NCBI GenBank assembly: GCA_019828565.1
Contig: JAHDYR010000044.1
Location: 1-12,666 of the forward strand
Direction of reading: 5' to 3'
DNA from: Carpediemonas membranifera BICM
Taxonomy: Eukaryota; Protista; Fornicata
Length of the DNA stretch: 12,666 nucleotides
Shown: in pieces, positions 1 through 12,666 of the stretch
How positions within the stretch are numbered: position 1 is the stretch's first letter
Layout of the letters: every line of letters starts with the position of its first letter
Position numbers and translations under genes: made by a program
Notes under the pieces: model-generated
What the model was told of the DNA's origin: nothing
The model's input: the letters and a program-made list of their open reading frames with translations, nothing else
The model's database searches: none

Positions 1-348
1 ACGGGCGGTGTGTACAAAGAACAGGGACGTAATCACCGTACGTTGATGACGTACAGTTACTAGGAATTCCTCGTTCATGCTGAAAAATTTCAAGCAGCAA
101 TCCCCAGTACGAAGAAGTTTCCAAGATTACCCAACCCTTCCGAGCCAGGTTCTACTCATTCACTCCTTCAATGTATAACGCGTGTGGCCGCATCCATCTA
201 AGGGCATAACAGACCTGTTATTGCCTCCAGCTTCCCCAACCTTGCGGTGGTTGTCCCTCTAAGAAGCGTCTACGAATACGTGATTCGCAGCGCTATTTAG
301 CAGGCGGAGGTCTCGTTCGTTATCGCAATCAAGCAGACAAATCACTCC
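1..348 (-). rRNA. 18S (SSU) rRNA gene, partial 3' region; cut by the window edge at 1 and interrupted at 348
   Basis: The reverse complement reads GGAGTGATTTGTCTGCTTGATTGCGATAACGAACGAGACC...CTTCTTAGAGGGAC...GCAATAACAGGTCTGTTATGCCCTTAGATG...AACGAGGAATTCCTAGTAA...GATTACGTCCCTGTTCTTTGTACACACCGCCCGT. These are eukaryote-type SSU signatures, ending at the 1392R primer site. Similarity stops at 348, where the plus strand should continue ...ACCAACTAAGAACGGCCATGCACC. Confidence 0.97.
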
Positions 349-2238
349 GTCAGGCACACCACTCGAGAGGCCTTCATCGACAACTCAGGCGTCAGCGTCG
401 ACGACAACACCAACGAGGTCGTCCGCAAGATGCTCAAGGTCAAAGACTGGATCAGGTTCGCCAACGCAGCGACCATGTACGCCAAGCGCAGCACCACCCG
501 CGGCCCAGCCCTGCCCCGCAAGCGCCTCATCCCCGTTGCTCCGAAGCTGAAGAAGACTAAGCGCAAGCAGACCAAGCGTAACCCCCGCAAGCCCGGCGCG
601 AAGAGCAAGCCCAGAGTGAGACACATAGACACGGCCTTCAGCGACGCAGAGCTCGAATCAGACGTCGAACTCGAGGCGCTGACCGACTATGAGTGCGAAG
701 ACAACGTCGCTGCCATTGGGTTCGAGCCTCTCAACGCCACGTACCGCTCACTACACGAGCTGAACCTCACCCGCGTCCAGCGAAGCCTCGTACAGCGCTT
801 CCGTCGCGACAACTTCTACCGCATCGAGAAGCAGAACGAGGTGCACGAGCTCGCCGCAGCAGGCATCATCAGCGCGGAGGAGACCACCGTCATCGACCAA
901 TGGGTGCAGGAGGCGTCAAGCAAAGACCCTGGCACAGTCATATCGATCATCAGCAACGACACCGACACGGCGAAAGAACTCCTCGACACAGCAGAGGCCG
1001 AGGACGCCAACGAGGCAATCCAGACTATTCTCGCCCGCATCGAAGAAGCACGCCGCGCCCAAGAGCATCCTCCAGCCGCCCACAAGCCTGCCCAGCCCAA
1101 GACCAAGAGCAAGCGGAAGGACAAGCGCAAGCACAAACGCAAGAACAAGCCCACCATCGTCTTCGACATGGGCTCTCCCGAGTCCCCGCCTACTCCCGAC
1201 TACAACAAGGGAGACGCGACATACGCGCTCACTGTCCAACACCGCCGTAAGTCCCGCGAGAGAGCAGAGCCGCCTACGCCCACCATCCGTGCTGCCGATC
1301 CTCCCACGCAACCAGAGGACGAGATGGCCAGCAAGTGCCCGCTGCTCAACCCCAGAAGGATCACGACCCGGGACTACAGCAACGCTCGGCTCTACGACAA
1401 CGACGGCGGTGGCGACTGCGCCATCTTCGCTCTAGCGATGCGCACCAAGGCGTTCTACGACTACTTTATGTCCCTGGGCCACGGAGACGACGTGGACGGG
1501 TGTGTCAAGGTCTTCAGGCAGCGCTTCAGGCAGTACTGCACTGACTACAGAGAGACACACTCTCTCATACACCTCGGCCTTAACCCTGAGGCTGTTCACA
1601 GAATCACTTTCGACGGAACGTTCCTGAACATCCCCACCGTGTGGGCATTCTACTGTCACGAGTGCGGCATCAAGAATGACTCTCTGATTCTGTACCAGAA
1701 CGACAGGACAATCGAGTACACCATCAAGCCAGCGGACGATGACCCCGACCGTCGTGTTTCCATCTGCCAGGACGTCGTCAACGACGACAATACAATTCTC
1801 GCCACCGGCATCCGCCACCACGAAGGTGTACACTTCATGTGCGTCTTCCCCGAAGACGGGATTGAACACCAGCGCGAGCACGTCGACCACTCAGCAGCCG
1901 CCAGAGAGACTGCACTCAACCCCATCGAGATCACAGACGAGGACGAGCCGCCGCCGCCTGCACACGTTACCCGCCAACGCATAGCCATGAGACGTCAAGC
2001 TCGGGCCAAGCAGGCACCCGCCCCTCGGCCCACGTCTCCTCTTGTGCACGACATCGAGAGCATATCAATCAGCTCGCCCTCTGCCTCACCGTCGTCGCAA
2101 GGCTACGTGCCCCCGAAGCGTCTGCGGACGACACCACCACGCCGTATCCTCCCGCAGCGCTCTACGCTCCCCGCGGGACCCTCCGACCCTCAGCACCCCG
2201 GGTGCCCTGGTCGAGTGCGGCTCGACGAGTCGATATAA
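349..2238 (+). CDS. 5'-truncated ORF with an OTU-like cysteine protease domain, likely a mobile-element protein
   Basis: The frame of the 430..2238 ORF is open upstream to the junction (349-429 = VRHTTREAFIDNSGVSVDDNTNEVVRK) with the same C/G-ending codon style, so the ATG at 430 is probably internal. OTU-like Cys box RLYDNDGGGDCAIFALA (Cys at 1417-1419), DGTF segment, and His box HHEGVHFMCV (His at 1831-1833). Lys/Arg-rich NLS-like tracts, acidic tracts and a Pro/Ser-rich tail. Ends in TAA. Confidence 0.7.
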   Translation, partial: VRHTTREAFIDNSGVSVDDNTNEVVRKMLKVKDWIRFANAATMYAKRSTTRGPALPRKRLIPVAPKLKKTKRKQTKRNPRKPGAKSKPRVRHIDTAFSDAELESDVELEALTDYECEDNVAAIGFEPLNATYRSLHELNLTRVQRSLVQRFRRDNFYRIEKQNEVHELAAAGIISAEETTVIDQWVQEASSKDPGTVISIISNDTDTAKELLDTAEAEDANEAIQTILARIEEARRAQEHPPAAHKPAQPKTKSKRKDKRKHKRKNKPTIVFDMGSPESPPTPDYNKGDATYALTVQHRRKSRERAEPPTPTIRAADPPTQPEDEMASKCPLLNPRRITTRDYSNARLYDNDGGGDCAIFALAMRTKAFYDYFMSLGHGDDVDGCVKVFRQRFRQYCTDYRETHSLIHLGLNPEAVHRITFDGTFLNIPTVWAFYCHECGIKNDSLILYQNDRTIEYTIKPADDDPDRRVSICQDVVNDDNTILATGIRHHEGVHFMCVFPEDGIEHQREHVDHSAAARETALNPIEITDEDEPPPPAHVTRQRIAMRRQARAKQAPAPRPTSPLVHDIESISISSPSASPSSQGYVPPKRLRTTPPRRILPQRSTLPAGPSDPQHPGCPGRVRLDESI

Positions 2239-2740
2239 GACGTGGCCATAACTTTTTTTTGAGCCATCGTTCAGGGGCGTTCTGACAAATCCCGTATACA
2301 CCGAAAGGAACCCAACACAACTGTGCATTGGCTTATCCCAACTCCAAACTTTTAAGGCCAAAGGTCAAAAATTCGGGCAGTTCTCTAGATTCGGGTGGAT
2401 TTCGCGACTCAATCATACCGCCAGAGACCCTTAAGTCCACCAAATCCAGCAGCCATGAAGCCTCAGGCCTCGTGCTGTACTGCACAAATTGTTAGGAATC
2501 GCCATTTTTGTCGTACAACTATTTATGCATAATTCAATGTAAAGACGACGGAGTTGAATGGAGCTTATGTAGCGCCTCCGAGCTGTCACGCACAGCTATC
2601 CAGAGAAGCAATCCGCAGCCCTGAACGCCGTCTGTAAGCATGTGCTCTGACCTCAAAGTCCAATTTTGAGGTCCCGTTTTTGAGCGGGAAAATTTAGTAT
2701 AAAATATTTGCGTTGTCCCAGATTTCAATGCATTTTCGAA

Positions 2741-2816
2741 GGACCCCTGGGGTAGGCTACACGCTGCATGTGTCGCCTTCCCTGGCAGGGGCCCAGGGGT
2801 CCCGTACCGGGACCCC
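2741..2816. repeat. GC-rich inverted repeats / hairpin cluster
   Basis: GGACCCCTGGG (2741-2751) is the perfect reverse complement of CCCAGGGGTCC (2792-2802). GGGGTCCCG (2796-2804) and CGGGACCCC (2808-2816) form a perfect 9-bp stem with a 3-nt loop. Confidence 0.9.
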
Positions 2817-2830
2817 CCAAAATCCGCAAT

Positions 2831-2853
2831 ACCTTACCATAACTTACCTTACC
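2831..2853. repeat. Degenerate pentamer tandem repeat (ACCTT)n
   Basis: ACCTT ACCAT AACTT ACCTT ACC: 4.6 units with 2 mismatches. Confidence 0.7.
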
Positions 2854-2868
2854 CCCCACATCGCTGCC

Positions 2869-5292
2869 ATGGCCGCTGCAACCAGCAGCGAATCCGCTCC
2901 GGCCAAGAAGAAAGGCAGACGTCCTCGCTGGAACAGAGGGAAGAAGAAGAGCCAGAAGGATTCTTCAGCCGAGACTGAGCAGCCTGCTACAGAGAAACAA
3001 GCTGACAAACCTGCCAAGTCCCGGAAGCCTGCACCGCGCCAGTCTAAGCCGCACACTGTGGGCCCCCTGTTACAGTGTCCCCCGCCGCCGCAGGGAGCGG
3101 ACAGGCGGGACGTGCTCGCGTATAAGCTCGCAACAGAGACGCTCGACTGCCCCATCTGCCTGAAGCCCGTCCGTGCCCGCAGCCAGGTGTCCGCCTGCAG
3201 GGGCTGCCATGAGGTGTTCCACCTGGCGTGCCTCAAGAAGTGGGCCGCAGTGCGCCAGCTCGACGGCGGGAAGTCCTTCGCGTGCCCGTGCTGCAACCTC
3301 GTCCAGCACACTGAGAAGGCATACCGTTGCTTCTGCGGCAAGGAGACGAACCCCGTGACCCCGGCTGGCGCGACCCCCCACACGTGTGGCGCCCTCTGCG
3401 GCAAGACGAGGCCCCACTGCCCCCACCCGTGCCCCCTGCCCTGCCACCCCGGCTCCTGCCCCGAGTGCGGCGCGCTGGGTCCAACAGTCGTCTGTTTCTG
3501 CGGCAAGAGCACCCATGCCACGCGGTGCGGGTCCGACCCCAGAGCCGGCTGGTCCTGCGGGGATGTCTGCGGCAGGCCCCTGGCATGCGGCCACCACACG
3601 TGCACGCTGCCCTGTCACGACGGGCCATGCCCCGAGTGCCCGCAGACAAGCCGCACCAGCTGCCACTGCGGCGCCGTCTCCCGGGACCTACCGTGCGGCT
3701 CGGCTGCCTTCTCCTGCGGCCAGTCCTGCCCCCACGGCCAGCCCTGCCCCATGGTCTGCCACGAGGGGCTGTGCCCGACCCTCGCCCTGCCCGGCCAAGT
3801 GGTGCCGAGGACGGTGCCAGCCGACCTGTCCTGCGGGCACGCCGGACATGCCGTCGCCCTCTCGTCGGGCGCGGTCGAGTTCCCCCCGATCCCCCTGCCC
3901 TGCACCGCGGACACGACCGTCTCCTGCCGCTGCGGCCGGACCACCGTCACTGTGCCATGCCGCGACCTCGGCACCTCGCCCCTCGCCCTCGTCGCACAGG
4001 CGCTGACGGGCCCCGTGACCGTGGGCCAGCTCCCCCAGGAGGCATTGACCGTCATCAGGGGCATCACACCGCAGGACCGCCGCCCGACTCGGATCGAGCA
4101 TCTCATGTTCGTGCTGAGCGGCGGCCTGCCGACAATCGGGCTGGACCAATCCGCGGGGGAGTACGCCATCGGCCGCCACAGCGACGCGTGGCCCACCTGC
4201 ACCCGGCGCTGCGACGCCCTGCTGGCCTGTGGCGTCCACCGCTGCACGAGGGTCTGCTGCGACGGGGCCGACCACGCATGCCACCGGAGCTGCGCCAAGC
4301 CCCTGTCGTGCGGCAAGCACCGCTGCCCCCTGCCCTGCCATACCGGCGCATGCCCGCCCTGCTCCGAGGTCGTCTCTACCCAGACGTGGACGTGCGCGTG
4401 CGGCCGGACCCACGTGCCGCCACCGATCCGGTGCGGGGACGTCATGCCGCAGTGCCCGCACCCCTGCCCCAGGCGGAGGGAGTGCGGCCACCCCGTCGAC
4501 CACGGCTGCCACGAGGGCCAGTGCCCGCCCTGCACCGCCAGAGTCCCGCGGGTGTGCGCCGGCGGACACACCAAGGTGTGGGCCGCGTGCGGCAGCCCCT
4601 GCCCGAAGCCAGTTTCGTGCGGCGCCTCGTGCAACCGCCCGCTCCCGTGCGGCCACCGCTGCCACGCCAAGTGCCACGACGGCGTCTGCCCGCCCTGTAC
4701 TGACCCCTGCGGCAAGCGTCTGCCGTGCGGCCACGCCTGCTCCCAGCCCTGCGGCCATGGTGGCGAGTGCGGGCCGTGCGAGGCGGTCGAGCTGGCCCGG
4801 TGCGCCTGCGGACTCCAGCAGCTTCGGGTGCCGTGTTCGCCAGAGCCCCCTGCCTGCACACCGGCCTGCGTTCCCCTGCGCAGGGCGAGACTGGCTCCGC
4901 TCGCTGGCCGCAACCTGACCATGCCCGGCGTCGAGCTGAGCGCCATCCCGACCGAGCCAGGCGACCGGCCTGCCCCCGCCACCCTCGACCTGGCCCACAC
5001 GGCGTTCGTGCTGCACCTGCCCTGCGCCGACGGCCCCGCGAGACTGGCGACCGTGCCGGACGTCGTGGGGGCCAGCACCGTGGCGGCGACGATCACGGCG
5101 GTCGAGTTCGAGGCCGGCGTGCCCGACACAGTATGCGGCCTGCCCTTCTTCGTGCTCAACAGCTGGTCCGACGGGCTTCAGTTCCTCGAGCCGACGGACA
5201 GCGGCGAGGACGACGACGAGGACGACTTCGGCCTGTTCCGGCCCCCGACAGAGGCGATCGAGTGGGACGCAGTTATTGCTGCATGGGAGTAA
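2869..5292 (+). CDS. NFX1: NF-X1-type zinc finger protein (NFX1/NFXL1/FAP1 family) with an N-terminal RING finger
   Basis: RING CPICLKPV...CRGCHEVFHLACLKKWA...CPCC, then the family motif YRCFCGK..NP......PHTCG..CGK, and many C-G-H-x-C-x3-C-H-x-G-x-C-x2-C repeats. First ATG in frame is 2869 (GCCATGG context); the ORF-track start at 2713 is non-ATG. Basic NLS-like N-terminus. Confidence 0.93.
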   Translation: MAAATSSESAPAKKKGRRPRWNRGKKKSQKDSSAETEQPATEKQADKPAKSRKPAPRQSKPHTVGPLLQCPPPPQGADRRDVLAYKLATETLDCPICLKPVRARSQVSACRGCHEVFHLACLKKWAAVRQLDGGKSFACPCCNLVQHTEKAYRCFCGKETNPVTPAGATPHTCGALCGKTRPHCPHPCPLPCHPGSCPECGALGPTVVCFCGKSTHATRCGSDPRAGWSCGDVCGRPLACGHHTCTLPCHDGPCPECPQTSRTSCHCGAVSRDLPCGSAAFSCGQSCPHGQPCPMVCHEGLCPTLALPGQVVPRTVPADLSCGHAGHAVALSSGAVEFPPIPLPCTADTTVSCRCGRTTVTVPCRDLGTSPLALVAQALTGPVTVGQLPQEALTVIRGITPQDRRPTRIEHLMFVLSGGLPTIGLDQSAGEYAIGRHSDAWPTCTRRCDALLACGVHRCTRVCCDGADHACHRSCAKPLSCGKHRCPLPCHTGACPPCSEVVSTQTWTCACGRTHVPPPIRCGDVMPQCPHPCPRRRECGHPVDHGCHEGQCPPCTARVPRVCAGGHTKVWAACGSPCPKPVSCGASCNRPLPCGHRCHAKCHDGVCPPCTDPCGKRLPCGHACSQPCGHGGECGPCEAVELARCACGLQQLRVPCSPEPPACTPACVPLRRARLAPLAGRNLTMPGVELSAIPTEPGDRPAPATLDLAHTAFVLHLPCADGPARLATVPDVVGASTVAATITAVEFEAGVPDTVCGLPFFVLNSWSDGLQFLEPTDSGEDDDEDDFGLFRPPTEAIEWDAVIAAWE

Positions 5293-5316
5293 ACACATTA
5301 GCGCCTAGGCGTCGTT

Positions 5317-6591
5317 TTAATTGAGGGGGCAGAGCTTGTTGGCCCGGGCGAGGGCAGCAATCATCGCATCCCAGAAGGCAGGCACGTCGAGCTTGGTGCA
5401 GACGGTGGCGTTCGGCTCCTGCTTCTGGAATCCGTACATGTCACAGCACGTGGCGCCGGCACACATGCCCTGGGTCTCGACAGCCAGGTGAACGGCCTTC
5501 GTCTCGAACAGCTCGGGGGCGACAGCGAAGAGGACGGCGCAAGGGTCATGGACGGGGGGGTGGTCGAAGTGGAAGACCTCGCGGTACGTCTCCTCGAAGA
5601 AGCCGAGCAGCTTGACCAGCACGTCGTGCAGCTTAGTGGCGCCCATGCCCTCCGCCATCTGGGTCTTGACGGCCTCGGTGATGGTGACGGTGTGGGTCAC
5701 GTCGAGTGGGACCATCGTCACAGGGACTCCGCTGGCGGCGACGATGGCGGCGGCCTCAGGGTCGCACTGGATGTTGAACTCGCTGAAGGAACCGGTGTTG
5801 CCCATGTTGTACGTGCCACCCATGAAGACGACCTCGATGTGCTTCTTCAGCTCAGGGAAGGCCTTGAGAAGTATGGCGATGTTCGTCTGGGCGCCGGTCG
5901 CCACGAGCTTGACGCGGCAGCTGCGGGCCTTAGAGGCGCTGATAATACGCTGTGCGATCTCCGCGAAGGGAGACTCGGGGCGTATGATCATCGGCTCGGG
6001 GTCAAAGTCAACGGTGTCCCAGAAGGCGGAGGTCAGCCCGCCCAGGCCGCTCTCGCCGTGGATCTCTGCACACTGCTGGGGCGCGCGGAGGATGGGGTCG
6101 GTGCTGCCCGGGATGACATCCCTCTTGGCCCCTGCGAGGAAGAGACTGCGAGCGGCGTTGTCGGTGACCTTGGCGAGTGTCTGGTTGCCCTGGACAGTGG
6201 AGATGCCGATTAGCGAAATCCCGGGGTGGTGGACGGCCAGCATGATGGCGAGCATGTCGTCGTGGCCCGGGTCGCAGTCGAGCCACATCGGGACCGTGGA
6301 GAGGTCCTCGCCCTCGACGCTGCAGACCGTGCGGGCCTCAGCGTTGAGCGCGGCGGTGATACAGATCTCGCGTCCGAACAGAGGGAACGAATAACCTATT
6401 TTTGCACTCTCGATGAAGTTCTCCGGGACACGGGTGCGACGCAGCGTAGTCTGGCGCGTGCTGCTGATCAGCTCGATCTCATTGGTGGCCGAAAAGAACA
6501 CCATCGTCTGTGATGAGGCCTTACGACCTTCCTCCTGCACAGAGACAGAGAATTCAGCGCGTTTCTCTTGGTTATCTGACGTCGAAAACAT
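5317..6591 (-). CDS. Inosine-uridine preferring nucleoside hydrolase with a ~100-aa N-terminal extension
   Basis: Signature WLDCDPGHDD (DxDxGxDD), ISTVQGN, IHGESGL, ATGAQTNIA, MGG, SEFNIQCDPEAA, MVPLDVTH and VHDPCAV. First in-frame ATG at 6591; the true start is uncertain (other ATGs lie further downstream, and a spliced upstream exon is possible). Confidence 0.93.
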   Translation of the reverse strand: MFSTSDNQEKRAEFSVSVQEEGRKASSQTMVFFSATNEIELISSTRQTTLRRTRVPENFIESAKIGYSFPLFGREICITAALNAEARTVCSVEGEDLSTVPMWLDCDPGHDDMLAIMLAVHHPGISLIGISTVQGNQTLAKVTDNAARSLFLAGAKRDVIPGSTDPILRAPQQCAEIHGESGLGGLTSAFWDTVDFDPEPMIIRPESPFAEIAQRIISASKARSCRVKLVATGAQTNIAILLKAFPELKKHIEVVFMGGTYNMGNTGSFSEFNIQCDPEAAAIVAASGVPVTMVPLDVTHTVTITEAVKTQMAEGMGATKLHDVLVKLLGFFEETYREVFHFDHPPVHDPCAVLFAVAPELFETKAVHLAVETQGMCAGATCCDMYGFQKQEPNATVCTKLDVPAFWDAMIAALARANKLCPLN

Positions 6592-6755
6592 CTTGTCAAA
6601 AACCTGCCAAGGATTTCCCCCTGATCCAGTCAACCTTGGTCTTGCTGGGTCGAATCAGGGGTGCTTCGTTGACGATATGCATGAATGCCAGCACTAACCT
6701 GGTCACAGCAATGGAATTCCGCTGTCACAGGGAAACGATGACACTATGACAGCAT

Positions 6756-7238
6756 TTACAACACAATAGGATCAATCTGATCGGCAAAGCCATGTAGCAT
6801 ATCGAAGGTTGTGCTAAAATCGATGTCATACAGGCCAGACTCTTCCTGCATCAGATGACTGAACTTGCGACGGATGGAGCAGTCAAACATGTCAAATGAG
6901 TTGTCATCCTCAGTCTTCAGCTTCTTATGAAGGGTCATATAGCAGCGCAGAGCCCTGAACATGAACTCATCCACGTCCTTGTTGCGCGCTGGATTATCAG
7001 TGTTCATGTTATTCGCTCTCATGAAGTCCTCAACGTTATTAAACTCGGTAGCATCTACTAAGCTCAGCTTGAATGCAGGAACTGTGTCTGCTTGCTGGTG
7101 AAGAGCATTGCTTAGCGCGTCTTTCAACGCCGGGTTCATTCCTGAGATACCAGCTACAGCTGGGTTGATAAGAAGAGCGCTGTCGGATTCTTCCTGCGCC
7201 TTTTCCGGTGTATATCCCTTTACGCGGGGAATGGTCAT
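6756..7238 (-). CDS. Hypothetical protein, 160 aa (weak by-eye resemblance to VPS28)
   Basis: ATG-to-TAA ORF with protein-like composition, preceded by AT-rich sequence and filling the gap between neighbouring genes. Confidence 0.7.
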   Translation of the reverse strand: MTIPRVKGYTPEKAQEESDSALLINPAVAGISGMNPALKDALSNALHQQADTVPAFKLSLVDATEFNNVEDFMRANNMNTDNPARNKDVDEFMFRALRCYMTLHKKLKTEDDNSFDMFDCSIRRKFSHLMQEESGLYDIDFSTTFDMLHGFADQIDPIVL

Positions 7239-7363
7239 CTAATATTTCTCATGACATGCTCGGTGGAAGAAGTGATGTGCAGTTTATGACGTTTGACACG
7301 CAGAAGTCACGTGCGCGACTGTCAGATTAATTGCAACTCCGTATCTCATCCACTTTACACCTG

Positions 7364-8737
7364 TTATCTCCGGCCAGCTGAGATCTCATCAAGAACATCC
7401 TGCCACGAGTAATGTGCCACGTCTGACACTGACTTTGCAGCAACAGCAGGCTGGTCACGTTCATATACGTCGAACACGACTATCTGCTTGTCTGACTTTG
7501 GAACTCTGATTGGGCGTATGAGCTGCGGAAGAAGGAAGTCATCTGCCATTGCGGCAATGTCCTTCGAACGCCAGAGGATGATCTGCTTGGGCTTCTTAAT
7601 CTCACATAGAACCTCTAGCTTCTCTTTCAATGGGCCGACCCGCAGATGCTCAAACGGTTTGGCGTGCAATGATTGCTTGACCTTGGATGTCGCAAGAGAC
7701 ATTGCGATGGATCCATTGGTTGCAAACAAGGGGTTCTTCTCCATTGTATAGCGGACGAGGGAGATCTGAATGGAGTCATTCTCCTCATTCCAAGACAGTG
7801 TCTTGACTGTCGGTTCCGACTCGGTTACGGGCTGTATAGCCTGACCAAATCGGGACGAAACAACCTCATGAGCGGCATTGGTCAGCTTAACAGCTTCTTG
7901 AACAGAGAGTGCGATGAAGTTGAAGGAGGAGCCGGCTGATGCGATTGTGAGAATGACGCCGCGATTGGTGTCACGAATGCCAAGACGCGTGCTATCTTCG
8001 AAGGGGATGACCGTTACAGGAGTCTGAATCAAATCCAAGTTCTTGACCACGATTCCATGGAAGAAAACAGTCGCCTCAGCAATAATGTTGGACATGGTTC
8101 GCACAAGTGATGAAACTGCCGAGCATGGATATGATATGTGGCACTCTTGCATCATCATGTAGGCGTATGCCGCCCACTCCTCAGATGCAAACTCCAAGTC
8201 TATCTCGGCAGTGGCCAGTGTTATCGTTCGACCATCGAGAGAGATGGCAGAGTCCTTTGAAATCGGCAAGACCATCCAAGGATCATCGGTGTAGTCTGAT
8301 GATAGCTTGAAAAGGTACAATGCCTGACCAATGAGCTCAGCGCGGGTCGAGTGGCAGCGTCCTTGGAACCTGACTGCAGCAGAGAACTGCGCGTGGCCGA
8401 ACGATGTACTGCTGCACTGATTCACCATCCCCGACAGTACACCGAGCAACTCCTCGACGTTAGTGTCGGGCGTCGTGTGAAACATCCACACGTTGCTCTT
8501 TCCGTCGTGGACGAGCAGACGTGGCATATCTCCACCGATCAAGTGGTAAGAAGCATTGTTAGAGAGAGAAAGTACGGTCTTTTCTGCAGAACCAGCTGAA
8601 GCGATTGAAATAGAGGCAACAGGGTGCTGGAGGAAGGTAGCAAGCACTTCTCTCGTCTCGGAGCCGCTCGTGTCATCGGGATCGACAAAAAGCAACTTCG
8701 TATGATAACTCTGGCGAATATCGTCGGTACTAGTCAT
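7364..8737 (-). CDS. Hypothetical protein with PH-like and C-terminal C2-like segments
   Basis: 457-codon ORF from the first ATG (AAAATG at 8737) to TAA. The segment ELIGQALYLFK...PWMVLPI...ITLAT...LEFASEEWAAYAYMMMQE follows the PH strand/terminal-helix pattern, and a second such helix occurs at FIALSVQEAVKLTNAA. The segment ILWRSKDI...KQIVVFDVYERD resembles copine-type C2. The ORF is well supported; the domains are tentative. Confidence 0.75.
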   Translation of the reverse strand: MTSTDDIRQSYHTKLLFVDPDDTSGSETREVLATFLQHPVASISIASAGSAEKTVLSLSNNASYHLIGGDMPRLLVHDGKSNVWMFHTTPDTNVEELLGVLSGMVNQCSSTSFGHAQFSAAVRFQGRCHSTRAELIGQALYLFKLSSDYTDDPWMVLPISKDSAISLDGRTITLATAEIDLEFASEEWAAYAYMMMQECHISYPCSAVSSLVRTMSNIIAEATVFFHGIVVKNLDLIQTPVTVIPFEDSTRLGIRDTNRGVILTIASAGSSFNFIALSVQEAVKLTNAAHEVVSSRFGQAIQPVTESEPTVKTLSWNEENDSIQISLVRYTMEKNPLFATNGSIAMSLATSKVKQSLHAKPFEHLRVGPLKEKLEVLCEIKKPKQIILWRSKDIAAMADDFLLPQLIRPIRVPKSDKQIVVFDVYERDQPAVAAKSVSDVAHYSWQDVLDEISAGRR

Positions 8738-9281
8738 TTTTCGGTTGTATGTTTGCAAAATTTGTCAAGAATTCCCACTAGAATGCATGCTCTTCTTCAC
8801 TGGTTCTTCCACCTGAGGATTTACGAAAATGTCGTCAGTAAACACGTAAATCAATTTATATACGCTTCCGATGGAGCTCAGAGCTCAGTTTGTGGCTGAA
8901 GAGCACAATATCGCATTCAAGAAGCATCGGTCGAGCAAAAGTGCAGGCTCTTCTTATCTCAAGCTGGGACTGTTCAGCCCACTGGAGCTCCTCCCAGTCG
9001 AGCTGTCTGCCTGAGCCAGTTGTTTACATGAAGATAAATCAGAATCGATAAAGTCTGCCGAGCTCCGTCGCGCCCACCGCCTTCTCCGCCTGACCAACTC
9101 GGTCATCACCCTCCCCACATCCCTGCCGCCGCGAGGCAGAGCCAACGGGAAGGCGCACAGGTGCCTTCCGTCGGCTGAAGCGTGGAACTGTATCATATTA
9201 CATACAATCGAGTAAATTCATAAATCAGAAAGCCATCAAGTTGAAGATGGCCTCAACAACCAAAAAACGTCAGTGTTCATC

Positions 9282-10298
9282 ATGAAGCTTTGGTGGGCAT
9301 CGCTTTTAACGTGCATTACTGTTGTAACCTGTTCGATTATTGGTGTTTCACCTTCTGTTGGACATGTTGAAAGCTGGCCCCCCACTGTATGCCTAGTTTT
9401 TGACGAAATACCCACGGTTAGTGAGTCCATGTTCGGCTTTGATTCTGCTGAGGCTGCTTCCTTCCTGAAATCTTCAGGCATGATGATCAGCCCTACTTCA
9501 TTCACCGACTATGCGAATGCCTCCAGTGTTGTGGTAGATTTAGCAGCAATGTCTGTCTGTTTTTTGTTCGACAGTCCGCCAGACCCTGCTCTCTTTGTCA
9601 TAGACCTGTTCTCCTTCACAACTACTGAAAGAGGTTTCGGGTTCACTCCAGCTTCAAAACTGGGATACTACTGTTCCTCAACATGTGACTTTTCTGATGA
9701 GATCGACCCAACACCGCTTGAACTCTTGTCTTATCTTTCATCTTCATCTCAAATGCCGGCTTCGTCACTCTGTTACAACTCTACGTCACAAGAATATGTC
9801 GGCACTGTCCAAGACATTGTCCACCTGCTTCCCGGTGACAGCATTGAGGAGTGCAGTAGCGCAACTGTGCTAACTATGAGTGATGAGCTGCTTATCCAGA
9901 CTCACGTGGAAGCCGGTATTTCTGTCTCCTCCACGTTGAATGACTCATTCACTTATGCAACCCTCCCATTCCGAACATATATTGCATCTCCTGGAGTTAT
10001 AACTTCCAGTTACTCTGTCATCCCAGAGATCCAATACGTTGAGGACATCGTCGAAGGACCGCTTTTCTGCTCGGCCTTAGGAAGCGGCATTTGCACATTG
10101 CTTCAGGATGAATGCTGGACCGATGGGACATACGAGCAGTTTATTACTTGCGCTGAGTCATACTTTGCTCCAGTTACGAATCCATATATCCACTTGCGAC
10201 AATCGTTCTATCTCACCGCTCAGAAATACATTGATTCCCTCAGTTACAGCTTCCTGTTCAGTACGGAGCACCATCCTTGGGTCAGCGCAGCATCTTGA
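9282..10298 (+). CDS. Secreted/membrane protein, N-terminal part (probably joined to the 10108..11643 frame)
   Basis: Signal-peptide-like start MKLWWASLLTCITVVTC; Cys-containing, Ser/Thr/acidic, beta-rich composition. It overlaps the next long ORF in the +1 frame over 10108-10298. Confidence 0.7.
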   Translation: MKLWWASLLTCITVVTCSIIGVSPSVGHVESWPPTVCLVFDEIPTVSESMFGFDSAEAASFLKSSGMMISPTSFTDYANASSVVVDLAAMSVCFLFDSPPDPALFVIDLFSFTTTERGFGFTPASKLGYYCSSTCDFSDEIDPTPLELLSYLSSSSQMPASSLCYNSTSQEYVGTVQDIVHLLPGDSIEECSSATVLTMSDELLIQTHVEAGISVSSTLNDSFTYATLPFRTYIASPGVITSSYSVIPEIQYVEDIVEGPLFCSALGSGICTLLQDECWTDGTYEQFITCAESYFAPVTNPYIHLRQSFYLTAQKYIDSLSYSFLFSTEHHPWVSAAS

Positions 10299-11643
10299 CT
10301 ATGACTTTGATACCACGTCGTTGACTTCTTTCGCGGTATCAGATGCAATATCTGTCACAATATCCAACGTTCCTGATGATTCTTCTCTTGCCGGAATTCG
10401 GAATGACTTTGTCGCGCTTATTCAGACCTCTGGTAAGGTTAGTCATTCTTGGGACTTCCCATGGGTCGAGCCTGATTCGTCGGAGGACCTCTCCGGGGAT
10501 CGTTTTGTTGAGTTTGTTCCTCGCTCCATGCTGTCCTCAACAAGTGATGCGAACTCGCTGTCATATTATCCTGCTGAAGGATACGACGGCTTCGAAGTGG
10601 ACAATGACCCATACGCATTTGCATCCGATGCGAGGTCCTCCTGTGATGCTTTGAATCTTTGCGACCCCAGTTCATTCTCTGTGTCGCCATCTGATGGCGG
10701 TGGATACATTTTGTATTGCGTGAAGCCCATTCTTCCGACAGTTTCATTCTCAGCTCTCGCTCAGGATCCGCCCTACAAAGCTTCATCTGCCGTATTCTCC
10801 ACGAAGCCGCTTGTTGCGACGTTCACGGCGTCCCCCGCGGCCCCCTACGACTTCTACACGGCCGACCTCGCCCTGTCCGTCGAGACGTCCGCCGACGCCA
10901 ACGTCACCATCTCCTGCGACACGGGGGACACCACTAAGGAGATCATCGCTGTCCCAGACGGCACAGTCACCCGCACCACGACCCTGACGCTGCCGACGTA
11001 CTACGGACGGTGGCGGGACCGCTGCCTCTTCGACGTGCCAGAGCCCAAGCTGGGCGGGTGTGCTGCGTCCATTGTCAGCCTGGGCACCGACACGCTCGTC
11101 GTCAACACCACCGTCACCAACAGCGGCACGCTCGACGGCACCTTCACCGGCTACGTCACGGTGGCGTCTGCCGAGGGCGACTTCGCGGCCACTGAGCAGT
11201 TCGACGTCGCCATCGAGGGCTCCCCCCTGGCGGCCGGCGTGACGGTGCTGTCGTACTCGTTCGCCGTGCCGGAGGACGCCGCGGGCTTCACGGCCACGGC
11301 GACGTGCCACCTCTCGGCCGAGTTCGACGACTGCTGGTTCCAGTCGGGGCTCGACGAGCTCAACGCGGACGCCAGCGACACCATCACTCGTGTCGTCGGC
11401 ACCGTCGAGGAGGACGTGGGCCCGATCGACTCCATCGCGGCGGCTGTCATGCAGCTGCATACCCGCGTTATCGCCACCGCTGTTGCCACGGTGCTGGCCG
11501 TGCTGTCGCCCTGGCTCCCCGACACGACACCCGACCTCGTCGTCGTGCAGGTGGCCACCGGGATCGGCCTTGGGGCCCTTGGCCTCGCCTCAGCGACCGT
11601 GCTGGGCGGCGCACTGTTGGCGCTGTCGTGGTTGAAGGTGTGA
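10286..11643 (+). CDS. Secreted/membrane protein, C-terminal part with Ig-like segments and C-terminal hydrophobic helices (HAP2/GCS1-like candidate)
   Basis: Long open frame with strong GC3 bias after ~10800. Ig/CARDB-like VNTTVTNSGTLDGTFTGYVTV and two hydrophobic segments at the C-terminus. The start coordinate is approximate because it depends on the splice or frameshift position. Confidence 0.7.
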
Positions 11644-12666
11644 GTAACCTACCTTACAGTAAATGAAGTGTGTGCTGCATGGCCTCGGGTCCGTGATCAT
11701 TATCGCCCAGTCTCTCATCCTGAGGCTCGTGGCACCGGATGGTACTCAGCCGTCAACATTAACGAGATCATAAATCGAGTTAAGCGTGCACACCGGGACG
11801 GAACGCTGTCGTGGATTTGGTGGAGGAATGAGGGCTAGAAATAGTTGCTATGTCGTTTACTGATACTATATATGCCGTAATGGTGGGTTTTCTCTTCTAT
11901 GAGCTCCTTTTAGCACCAGCATCTCTTCCTTCATCGAGGCATCGAGATTGGGCATAAAATCGCCTTAGGCCGCTCAGTGCCAGTATGCACAGCTATACTG
12001 CAGCATTTATCTGCCAAAATATTATCGACAACGTTCTTTTACTCAGCAGATCACCTTAACTCCTCTCGCCCTCGTCGCCCGCTCCACCCCGCAGCCAGCC
12101 CTGCAACCAGCATCCCGCAGATGCAATAACTACACTATTCTCTGCGTCAGTTCCGTCCTAGTCGTTCACCCGCCTGTCTGCTGTGGTGCAAGCAAGTGCA
12201 GTTTTTGCAGCTCACGCCAAGAAGCTATCCGCGCCAATGACTGCTCCATCACCCTGCCACTTCATTTGTGTCTTACATGCATGTGGTATTGCGGTCGAAA
12301 GCATCGTTACTAAACTGGAGGGCGGGGTACCTGCCCCTGCAATCCAGCAGGGCTCTCGCCCCACACCGCCCGAGTCAGCTGCAGTCGGACAACATTGTCC
12401 ATGAGCATCACTATTTGGTCAGGTGCTTCTAGCCGCACCAGCTCCGATCGGCCGTCTGACTGTCGGGAAGTTGACGGTCTCGAGTCGTGTTGAACTGGAC
12501 AACCATTGGCAATCCCTACAAATCACGCTAAATTTCTTATTCATAGCTAATCATGAAACTATTACGATACGCGTTCAATCACGATGAGCTCTGAGTGTCG
12601 AGACTCGTCTTAACCTGCGATTTCTGAAATCGTCATTAACTCATTAGCCAGAAGGATGCCATCATC

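Follow-up and report, generated by a model that had tools for sequence, protein, structure and literature searches.

The DNA analysed here (the window, positions 1-12,666) is a stretch of the genome of Carpediemonas membranifera BICM that makes up the entire contig C46, at one end of which a piece of an 18S rRNA gene in antisense orientation abuts, at positions 348/349, the remnant of a Helitron-like transposon. The evidence inclines us, with limited confidence, to regard this junction as a one-off chromosome-end rearrangement, in which a Helitron-capped end, after erosion, captured the distal portion of a terminal array of rRNA genes (rDNA). According to this account as a whole, which we hold with the same reserve, C46 is a small chromosome-end contig recording successive end events. 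A previous sequence-only reading of the window had offered two possibilities, the 5′ junction of a truncated, possibly 18S-targeting element or a rearrangement or assembly chimera between two repeats, and the evidence favours the second of them. Genome comparisons were made against the organism's own assembly (24,237,836 bp in 69 contigs), which has been described as 24.2 Mb with 57.1% G+C, obtained with Oxford Nanopore (ONT) R9.4 and Illumina reads from a genome predicted to be haploid (PMC8516963). The subtelomeric Helitron stacks were sampled and not read end to end, so that the counts of copies and ends given below are lower bounds.

The 18S fragment and the junction

Only one rRNA match was found in the window, that to Rfam family RF01960 (eukaryotic small-subunit rRNA) on the minus strand, with 197 bits and an E value of 4e-56, and its credible part stops near base 348. 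The fragment (positions 1-348, minus strand) corresponds to nt 1277-1624 of the 1767 nt of the organism's own 18S, and it is identical at 348 of 348 positions to the intact copies at C26:938445-938792 and C23:51724-52071. On the left it is bounded by the contig end and on the right by the junction, beyond which the intact 18S and the window diverge in a three-way comparison of the window, the own 18S and a Helitron copy from C1. These data confirm that the 18S gene is broken at this point and joined in antisense to an open frame. They also confirm that the remaining 5′ part of the gene (1276 nt) is absent from the window, since the Rfam scan yielded this single small-subunit match.

Base 349 is the first base of a GTC codon in frame 1, and from there to position 2238 the frame comprises 630 codons, with the first ATG at 430 and no start codon at the junction itself, in agreement with what had been described. 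The same frame is open from 301 to the stop codon at 2236-2238. The in-frame abutment, with a chance of one in three, and the 48 nt of open frame inside the 18S are incidental and carry no significance. Base 348 (C) is compatible with both partners of the rDNA/Helitron junction (348-349), which leaves 1 nt of microhomology at the join. A search with a 25-mer spanning the junction, in which up to 2 mismatches were allowed, returned a single match in the 24.2 Mb, and no reciprocal of the junction was detected in the assembly with up to 3 mismatches. Neither an exact-protein look-up in other assemblies nor an exact 30-mer scan of metagenome contigs gave any match, and since the records of this genome itself were possibly left out of both, these blanks are uninformative on the junction.

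The open frame and its Helitron family

The window sequence between 348 and 2166 recurs in the assembly at 91-96% DNA identity on contigs C1 (three copies), C37, C38, C31 (two copies) and C15. In five of these copies (those of C1, C37 and C38), the DNA upstream of the equivalent of base 349 is more of the same Helitron, with no rDNA. The C37 copy contains a 1707-codon open frame (C37:13499-18619), and the first codon of the window frame aligns with its codon 1044. The C37 frame matched Pfam Helitron_like_N (E 8.5e-8, profile positions 87-189 of 191), with the HUH motif in the form HYH and the two-tyrosine motif as Y-I-V-K-Y. A PIF1-like helicase (PF05970, E 1e-24) is encoded C-terminal to this Rep domain and upstream of the window's truncation point. 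The Rep/HUH domain is thus present in the family, as represented by the C37 paralogue, and absent from the window copy, which starts about 1043 codons downstream, after the helicase, and retains a linker, a putative OTU-like domain and a tail. No reverse transcriptase was found by Pfam searches in the window open reading frame (ORF), nor in the longer C37 paralogue. The presence of Rep and PIF1 and the lack of reverse transcriptase in this paralogue indicate that the element is a Helitron-like rolling-circle DNA transposon and not a retrotransposon. The element in the window (349-2847, plus strand) corresponds to the longest copy (C37:13499 onward) from reference position 3130, with Rep and helicase missing, and its 630-codon frame (349-2238, plus strand) is a dead remnant, the C-terminal part of a Rep-helicase-OTU-like polyprotein. 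The description of the ORF as a 5′-truncated piece of a mobile element was therefore correct, and the interpretation of the truncation as the mark of target-primed reverse transcription has to be abandoned, because the element is a Rep/PIF1 Helitron.

The 3′ part of the remnant carries the features of its family. A subterminal hairpin with a 9-bp stem and a 3-nt loop was read at 2796-2816 (plus strand), 31 nt before the terminus at 2847, and it is kept in all sampled 3′ ends. The terminus itself (2838-2847, plus strand), ...CATAACTTAC, is invariant and common to 20 distinct sampled 3′ ends, in which it is followed by 0-5 telomere repeats and then by unlike DNA. This DNA is either the next Helitron of the same family, beginning at reference position 7, 1594, 1955, 3093, 3843 or 4743, or unrelated sequence, so the truncation of the window copy at reference position 3130 is one more among varied 5′ truncation points. 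None of the sampled copies extends 5′ of the C37 copy and none shows an intact 5′ end, all of them being 5′-truncated. The canonical Helitron termini (5′ TC ... CTRR 3′) do not describe this family, which ends in ...CTTAC. Given this 3′ end and the lack of an intact 5′ end, we assign the family to a non-canonical Helitron-like lineage.

Helitrons are well known as carriers of host gene fragments, and the 18S piece could accordingly be of host origin, acquired by the Helitron through capture or transduction, and would then be part of a composite, non-autonomous element with its 5′ end beyond the contig. The contig end would hide any sequence further to the left, as this explanation supposes. 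Nevertheless, a mobilised composite would be expected to leave some further copies of the junction and there is no second one, the fragment matches working 18S copies with 100% identity, and no 5′ end is defined for a family in which every copy found is 5′-truncated. We consider this explanation improbable.

Within the remnant, a putative OTU-like cysteine protease domain (1387-1851, plus strand) was recognised at the level of motifs, with a candidate Cys at 1417-1419 and a candidate His at 1831-1833. The motifs GGGDCAIFAL and G-x-H-F/Y are invariant in a paralogue on C11 that is 32% identical, and the ESM Atlas lead for the region pointed to OTU-bearing clusters (0.93). The region had no Pfam match even at E 10 and no match in a PDB sequence search, and its AlphaFold2 model was poor (predicted local distance difference test score, pLDDT, 52.6). 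On C11 (269391-269849), another Helitron-like family shows a 1758-codon frame with the same OTU-like motifs.

A 60-bp module (2165-2224, plus strand) marks the point at which the subfamily of the window departs from the subtelomeric subfamily. The same module stands alone at at least 10 loci, on C1, C2, C3, C4 and C6, with 97-98% identity, and may be the end of another repeat. The window copy falls in the same subfamily as the internal cluster of C1, with up to 100% identity over 1518-2166. Compared with the C1 copies it shows 67 substitutions and one 4-nt indel, and its frame is intact.

Chromosome ends and the origin of the junction

The repeat (CCTTA)n, which is taken to be the telomere repeat, was found in the first few hundred bases of C14, C31 and C37; C24 contains its complement near position 491,600. 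At the start of C31 it extends over about 590 bases, noisy at first and then clean. Helitron units were located at the starts of C31, C37 and C38, all on the plus strand, and at the end of C15, where they are on the minus strand, a pattern in which the Helitron 5′ side is always directed toward the contig end. The other sampled copies that reach the equivalent of base 349 have no contact with rDNA, and show there either Helitron sequence or telomere repeats and another Helitron 3′ end. The window copy is the only sampled end that is capped by 18S and not by a Helitron 3′ end or telomere repeats.

These observations bear directly on the proposal that the ORF belongs to a truncated element that targets a conserved 18S site, in the manner of R7/R8, and that it was inserted in antisense with its 5′ junction at 348/349. 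The break does fall in a conserved 18S stretch, and the genome holds an antisense 18S-specific retrotransposon elsewhere, on C31. However, what the ORF family encodes is Rep together with a PIF1 helicase, with no reverse transcriptase, none of the seven intact 18S copies is interrupted at nt 1277, and the C31 retrotransposon uses 18S nt 588 and has no sequence in common with the window. Comparison of the upstream flanks of 10 other copies revealed no rDNA in any of them, and the 3′ end of the element in the window adjoins the broken edge of a gene duplicate instead of 18S. No independent copies flanked by rDNA on each side were found at this rDNA site in the assembly: the junction is unique, and the 3′ flank of the element is the duplicate of an NF-X1-type gene. 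It had been anticipated that the proposal would fall if other copies proved to be randomly placed, with no rDNA association; the lack of association was observed, and the random placement was not, as the copies are associated with telomeres. Targeting of 18S is thus highly improbable, and the claim of an antisense, 18S-targeting protist element fails, which leaves no new class of rDNA parasite.

Two related possibilities were also rejected. A template jump onto rRNA during reverse transcription would have given sense 18S, whereas antisense 18S was observed, and the family has no reverse transcriptase. A link to the 18S-specific, CRE-like retrotransposon of C31 is discarded by the difference in sites (nt 588 vs nt 1277) and the absence of shared sequence. 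That retrotransposon, which contains an RVT_1 domain, is stacked three times at C31:49,098-63,163, antisense to 18S and with its 3′ end always at nt 588 (the 530-loop site). Between its copies lie 182-bp pieces of 18S (nt 407-588), and the outermost copy, which is 5′-truncated, is joined directly to a Helitron 3′ end at C31:49098.

The orientation of the 18S fragment was compared with that of the rDNA at other contig ends. Contig C23 starts inside a 28S gene and contains six rDNA units with a minus-strand 18S. On C31, whose telomere is at the left, the innermost, broken rDNA unit also has its 18S on the minus strand and is followed by the same external transcribed spacer/intergenic spacer sequence as in C23 and then by unique DNA. 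This layout indicates that the rDNA arrays are terminal and transcribed toward the telomere. The 18S of C46 has the same polarity as at the left ends of C23 and C31, as expected from capture of the distal part of an array. Fusion of two chromosome ends in head-to-head orientation was rejected, since with the outward rDNA polarity of C23 and C31 it would have given 18S with its sense on the plus strand.

On the proximal side, the Helitron end is followed by the telomere-type tract CTTACC (2848-2853, plus strand) and then by a duplicate of an internal region of C1. Positions 2854-6659 (plus strand) are a 99% duplicate of C1:827950-831758, with an NF-X1-type zinc-finger gene at 2869-5292 and an IU-nucleoside hydrolase gene at 5317-6633 on the minus strand, and a second block (10787-12666, plus strand), 99% identical to C1:836292-838169, reaches the contig end. 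In the C1 paralogue, the position of the Helitron end is occupied by ordinary upstream DNA: the native sequence reads ...GTTCCTT, followed by a run of C and the NF-X1 ATG, and the window reads ...CTTACCTTA at that place. From this comparison we conclude that the break in the duplicate lies at a telomere-like CCTT, 15-21 bp upstream of the NF-X1 start codon. Other stacks likewise start with a Helitron end on a broken edge. The intervening 4.1 kb (6660-10786), with about 48% G+C, have no counterpart in the 4.5-kb middle of the C1 locus or elsewhere in the genome, and C46 is therefore a distinct locus and not a mis-assembled copy of C1. Together with the distinct, frame-intact Helitron variant, this unique sequence indicates that the contig represents a polished locus and not raw read noise.

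These structures can be arranged in a sequence of four events. It would begin with a copy of the internal C1 segment (NF-X1, nucleoside hydrolase and downstream genes), which in the window is seen to end abruptly at the native CCTT. The broken edge would then have gained one telomere-type repeat and the exact 3′ terminus of a telomere-stacking Helitron, both of which are present in the contig; other Helitron copies at chromosome ends are attached likewise, with the 5′ end outward. In a third step, the outward Helitron would have lost Rep and helicase, probably by terminal erosion, down to reference position 3130. Finally, the eroded end may have acquired the distal part of a terminal rDNA array, entering at 18S nt 1277, by alternative end joining or by break-induced replication (BIR) primed by the 1 nt of microhomology. 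In C. membranifera, Ku70-Ku80 and DNA-PKcs have been reported to be absent and genes for alternative end joining and BIR to be present (PMC8516963), and the join would therefore use one of these two routes.

Several points weigh against this account of the junction. The 1 nt shared at the join is what chance would give, the junction occurs only once in the assembly and is known from assembly sequence alone, and the contig, 12.7 kb long with repeats at both bounds, is of a type that could carry the trace of a chimeric long read. The contig holds no more than 348 bp of rDNA, the continuation of which past the contig end is an assumption, and the erosion is deduced from the pattern, of which incomplete copying would give an identical picture.

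The same data bring in the possibility that a chimeric nanopore read or a wrong join in the assembly graph placed the 18S on a contig whose Helitron copy actually continues with the helicase or ends in telomere repeats. A junction located 348 bp from the end of such a contig, unique, lacking a reciprocal partner and with the microhomology of a random join, would suit an artefact, as would an assembly of ONT R9.4 and Illumina reads (PMC8516963). In chimeric nanopore reads, rDNA is a frequent partner owing to its copy number. On the other hand, the polarity of the rDNA is not random and matches that of real terminal arrays, the adjoining Helitron is a distinct, frame-intact variant, which implies that the locus had real coverage, and with a published long-read coverage of more than 52x (PMC8516963) the consensus is normally backed by several reads. 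We regard an artefact as possible, although rather unlikely. The capture of terminal rDNA by an eroded end is the origin that we cautiously prefer, and the 18S junction, whether the scar of a single rearrangement or an artefact, does not by itself amount to a discovery.

Further observations concern the chromosome ends and the C1 duplicate. The internal Helitron cluster of C1, a contig of 1.87 Mb, occupies C1:881,168-943,809, with minus-strand copies at 881-921 kb and plus-strand copies at 936-944 kb. In these two opposed stacks the outward-facing 5′ sides converge, as they would if two chromosome ends had fused. Immediately internal to the telomere repeats of C31 there is a 423-bp satellite (C31:595-5700), which is shared with C37:10,285-11,643. 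A further Helitron-like family, with a Rep about 30% identical and open frames of 1006-1693 codons near contig starts, was found at C26:868-2514, C26:9743-11347 and C38:22447-24093.

The unrelated middles of the two duplicated loci, 4.1 kb in C46 vs 4.5 kb in C1 (within C1:831600-836400), have both about 46-50% G+C, and the flanks have 61-75%. The boundary of the swap at 10786/10787 falls inside a membrane-protein gene, in which the signal-peptide/ectodomain halves differ and the C-terminal half is shared by the two loci. As a whole, the relationship between C46 and C1:827,950-838,169 is cassette-like, with a subtelomeric copy set against an internal one. At 10243-10298 the membrane-protein gene shifts frame, from the ORF at 9216-10295 to that at 10081-11640, owing to a short intron, a frameshift or a sequencing error. 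Positions 8959-9225 contain short dispersed repeats (about 65-180 bp, 69-98% identity) present on more than 20 contigs. No tRNA gene was detected in the window.

Comparison with known systems

The ORF is a dead and unremarkable piece of a Helitron family, and the habit of this family of residing at chromosome ends has one published parallel, in Paramecium. The contig adds one more data point on the chromosome ends of C. membranifera, a free-living protist in which ORC/Cdc6 and Ku-dependent end joining are reported to be missing. Should the junction be real, a Helitron stack can start on a freshly broken, gene-bearing end and erode, and an rDNA array can land on the eroded end, which bears on the movement of rDNA between chromosome ends and on the mending of ends in the Carpediemonas lineage. 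A broader interpretation, which we offer only tentatively and on the same proviso, is that the ends are mended here without Ku-dependent joining, so that Helitron-capped ends erode and are capped again by Helitrons or capture whole terminal rDNA arrays, with rDNA moving between ends together with their caps. In this interpretation the contig would also represent an internal locus copied to a subtelomeric position, with its 4-kb middle swapped in a cassette-like manner.

Healing of chromosomes by telomere capture or BIR takes place at subtelomeres, and rDNA next to telomeres is known in Giardia. The C46 junction resembles such cases in the polarity that is kept, the little or no homology at the join and the absence of a reciprocal product, and differs from them in that the event is deduced from one junction at a contig end, with the captured array and the telomere lying off the contig.

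The elements specific to rDNA include R7/R8 in 18S, R2/R4/R5/R9 in 28S and Pokey. As with these elements, the mobile-element sequence in the window abuts a conserved site of an rRNA gene; in contrast to them, there is a single junction with no second rDNA flank, the protein is of a different type, and the other copies lie outside rDNA. R8 and R9 are retrotransposons of the R2 lineage from animals (PMC5035012).

The Helitron stacks of Carpediemonas are one-way, with variable 5′ truncation and a constant 3′ end. They share these traits with the arrays of telomeric retrotransposons, HeT-A/TART in Drosophila and GilM/GilT in Giardia, which form head-to-tail, one-way stacks of copies variably truncated at the 5′ end and constant at the 3′ end. 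This likeness explains why target-primed reverse transcription had been suggested from the window. Unlike those retrotransposons, the Carpediemonas family encodes a rolling-circle Rep and a PIF1 helicase and no reverse transcriptase.

The telomere-capping Helitrons of Paramecium aurelia are RepHel elements found only at chromosome ends, where their orientation bias is absolute (BMC Biol 2026, PMC13085455). Their 5′ side, with the left terminal sequence (LTS), faces outward and their 3′ side, with the right terminal sequence (RTS), inward, and short telomeric repeats of C-strand polarity invariably follow the RTS (PMC13085455). No rDNA junction of the kind found here was described in that study, in which a link between Helitrons and rDNA is raised only as speculation (PMC13085455). 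The sampled Carpediemonas copies differ from the Paramecium elements in being all 5′-truncated, at different points, and in having their fixed 3′ end often directly on non-telomeric broken DNA. The chromosome-end habit in a fixed orientation, with the 3′ end followed by C-strand telomeric repeats, agrees with the Paramecium description. Judged by the described arrangement (PMC13085455), the two systems appear alike in the stacking of elements at chromosome ends in one orientation, in the association of the 3′ end with C-strand repeats, and in the satellites located within and between copies.

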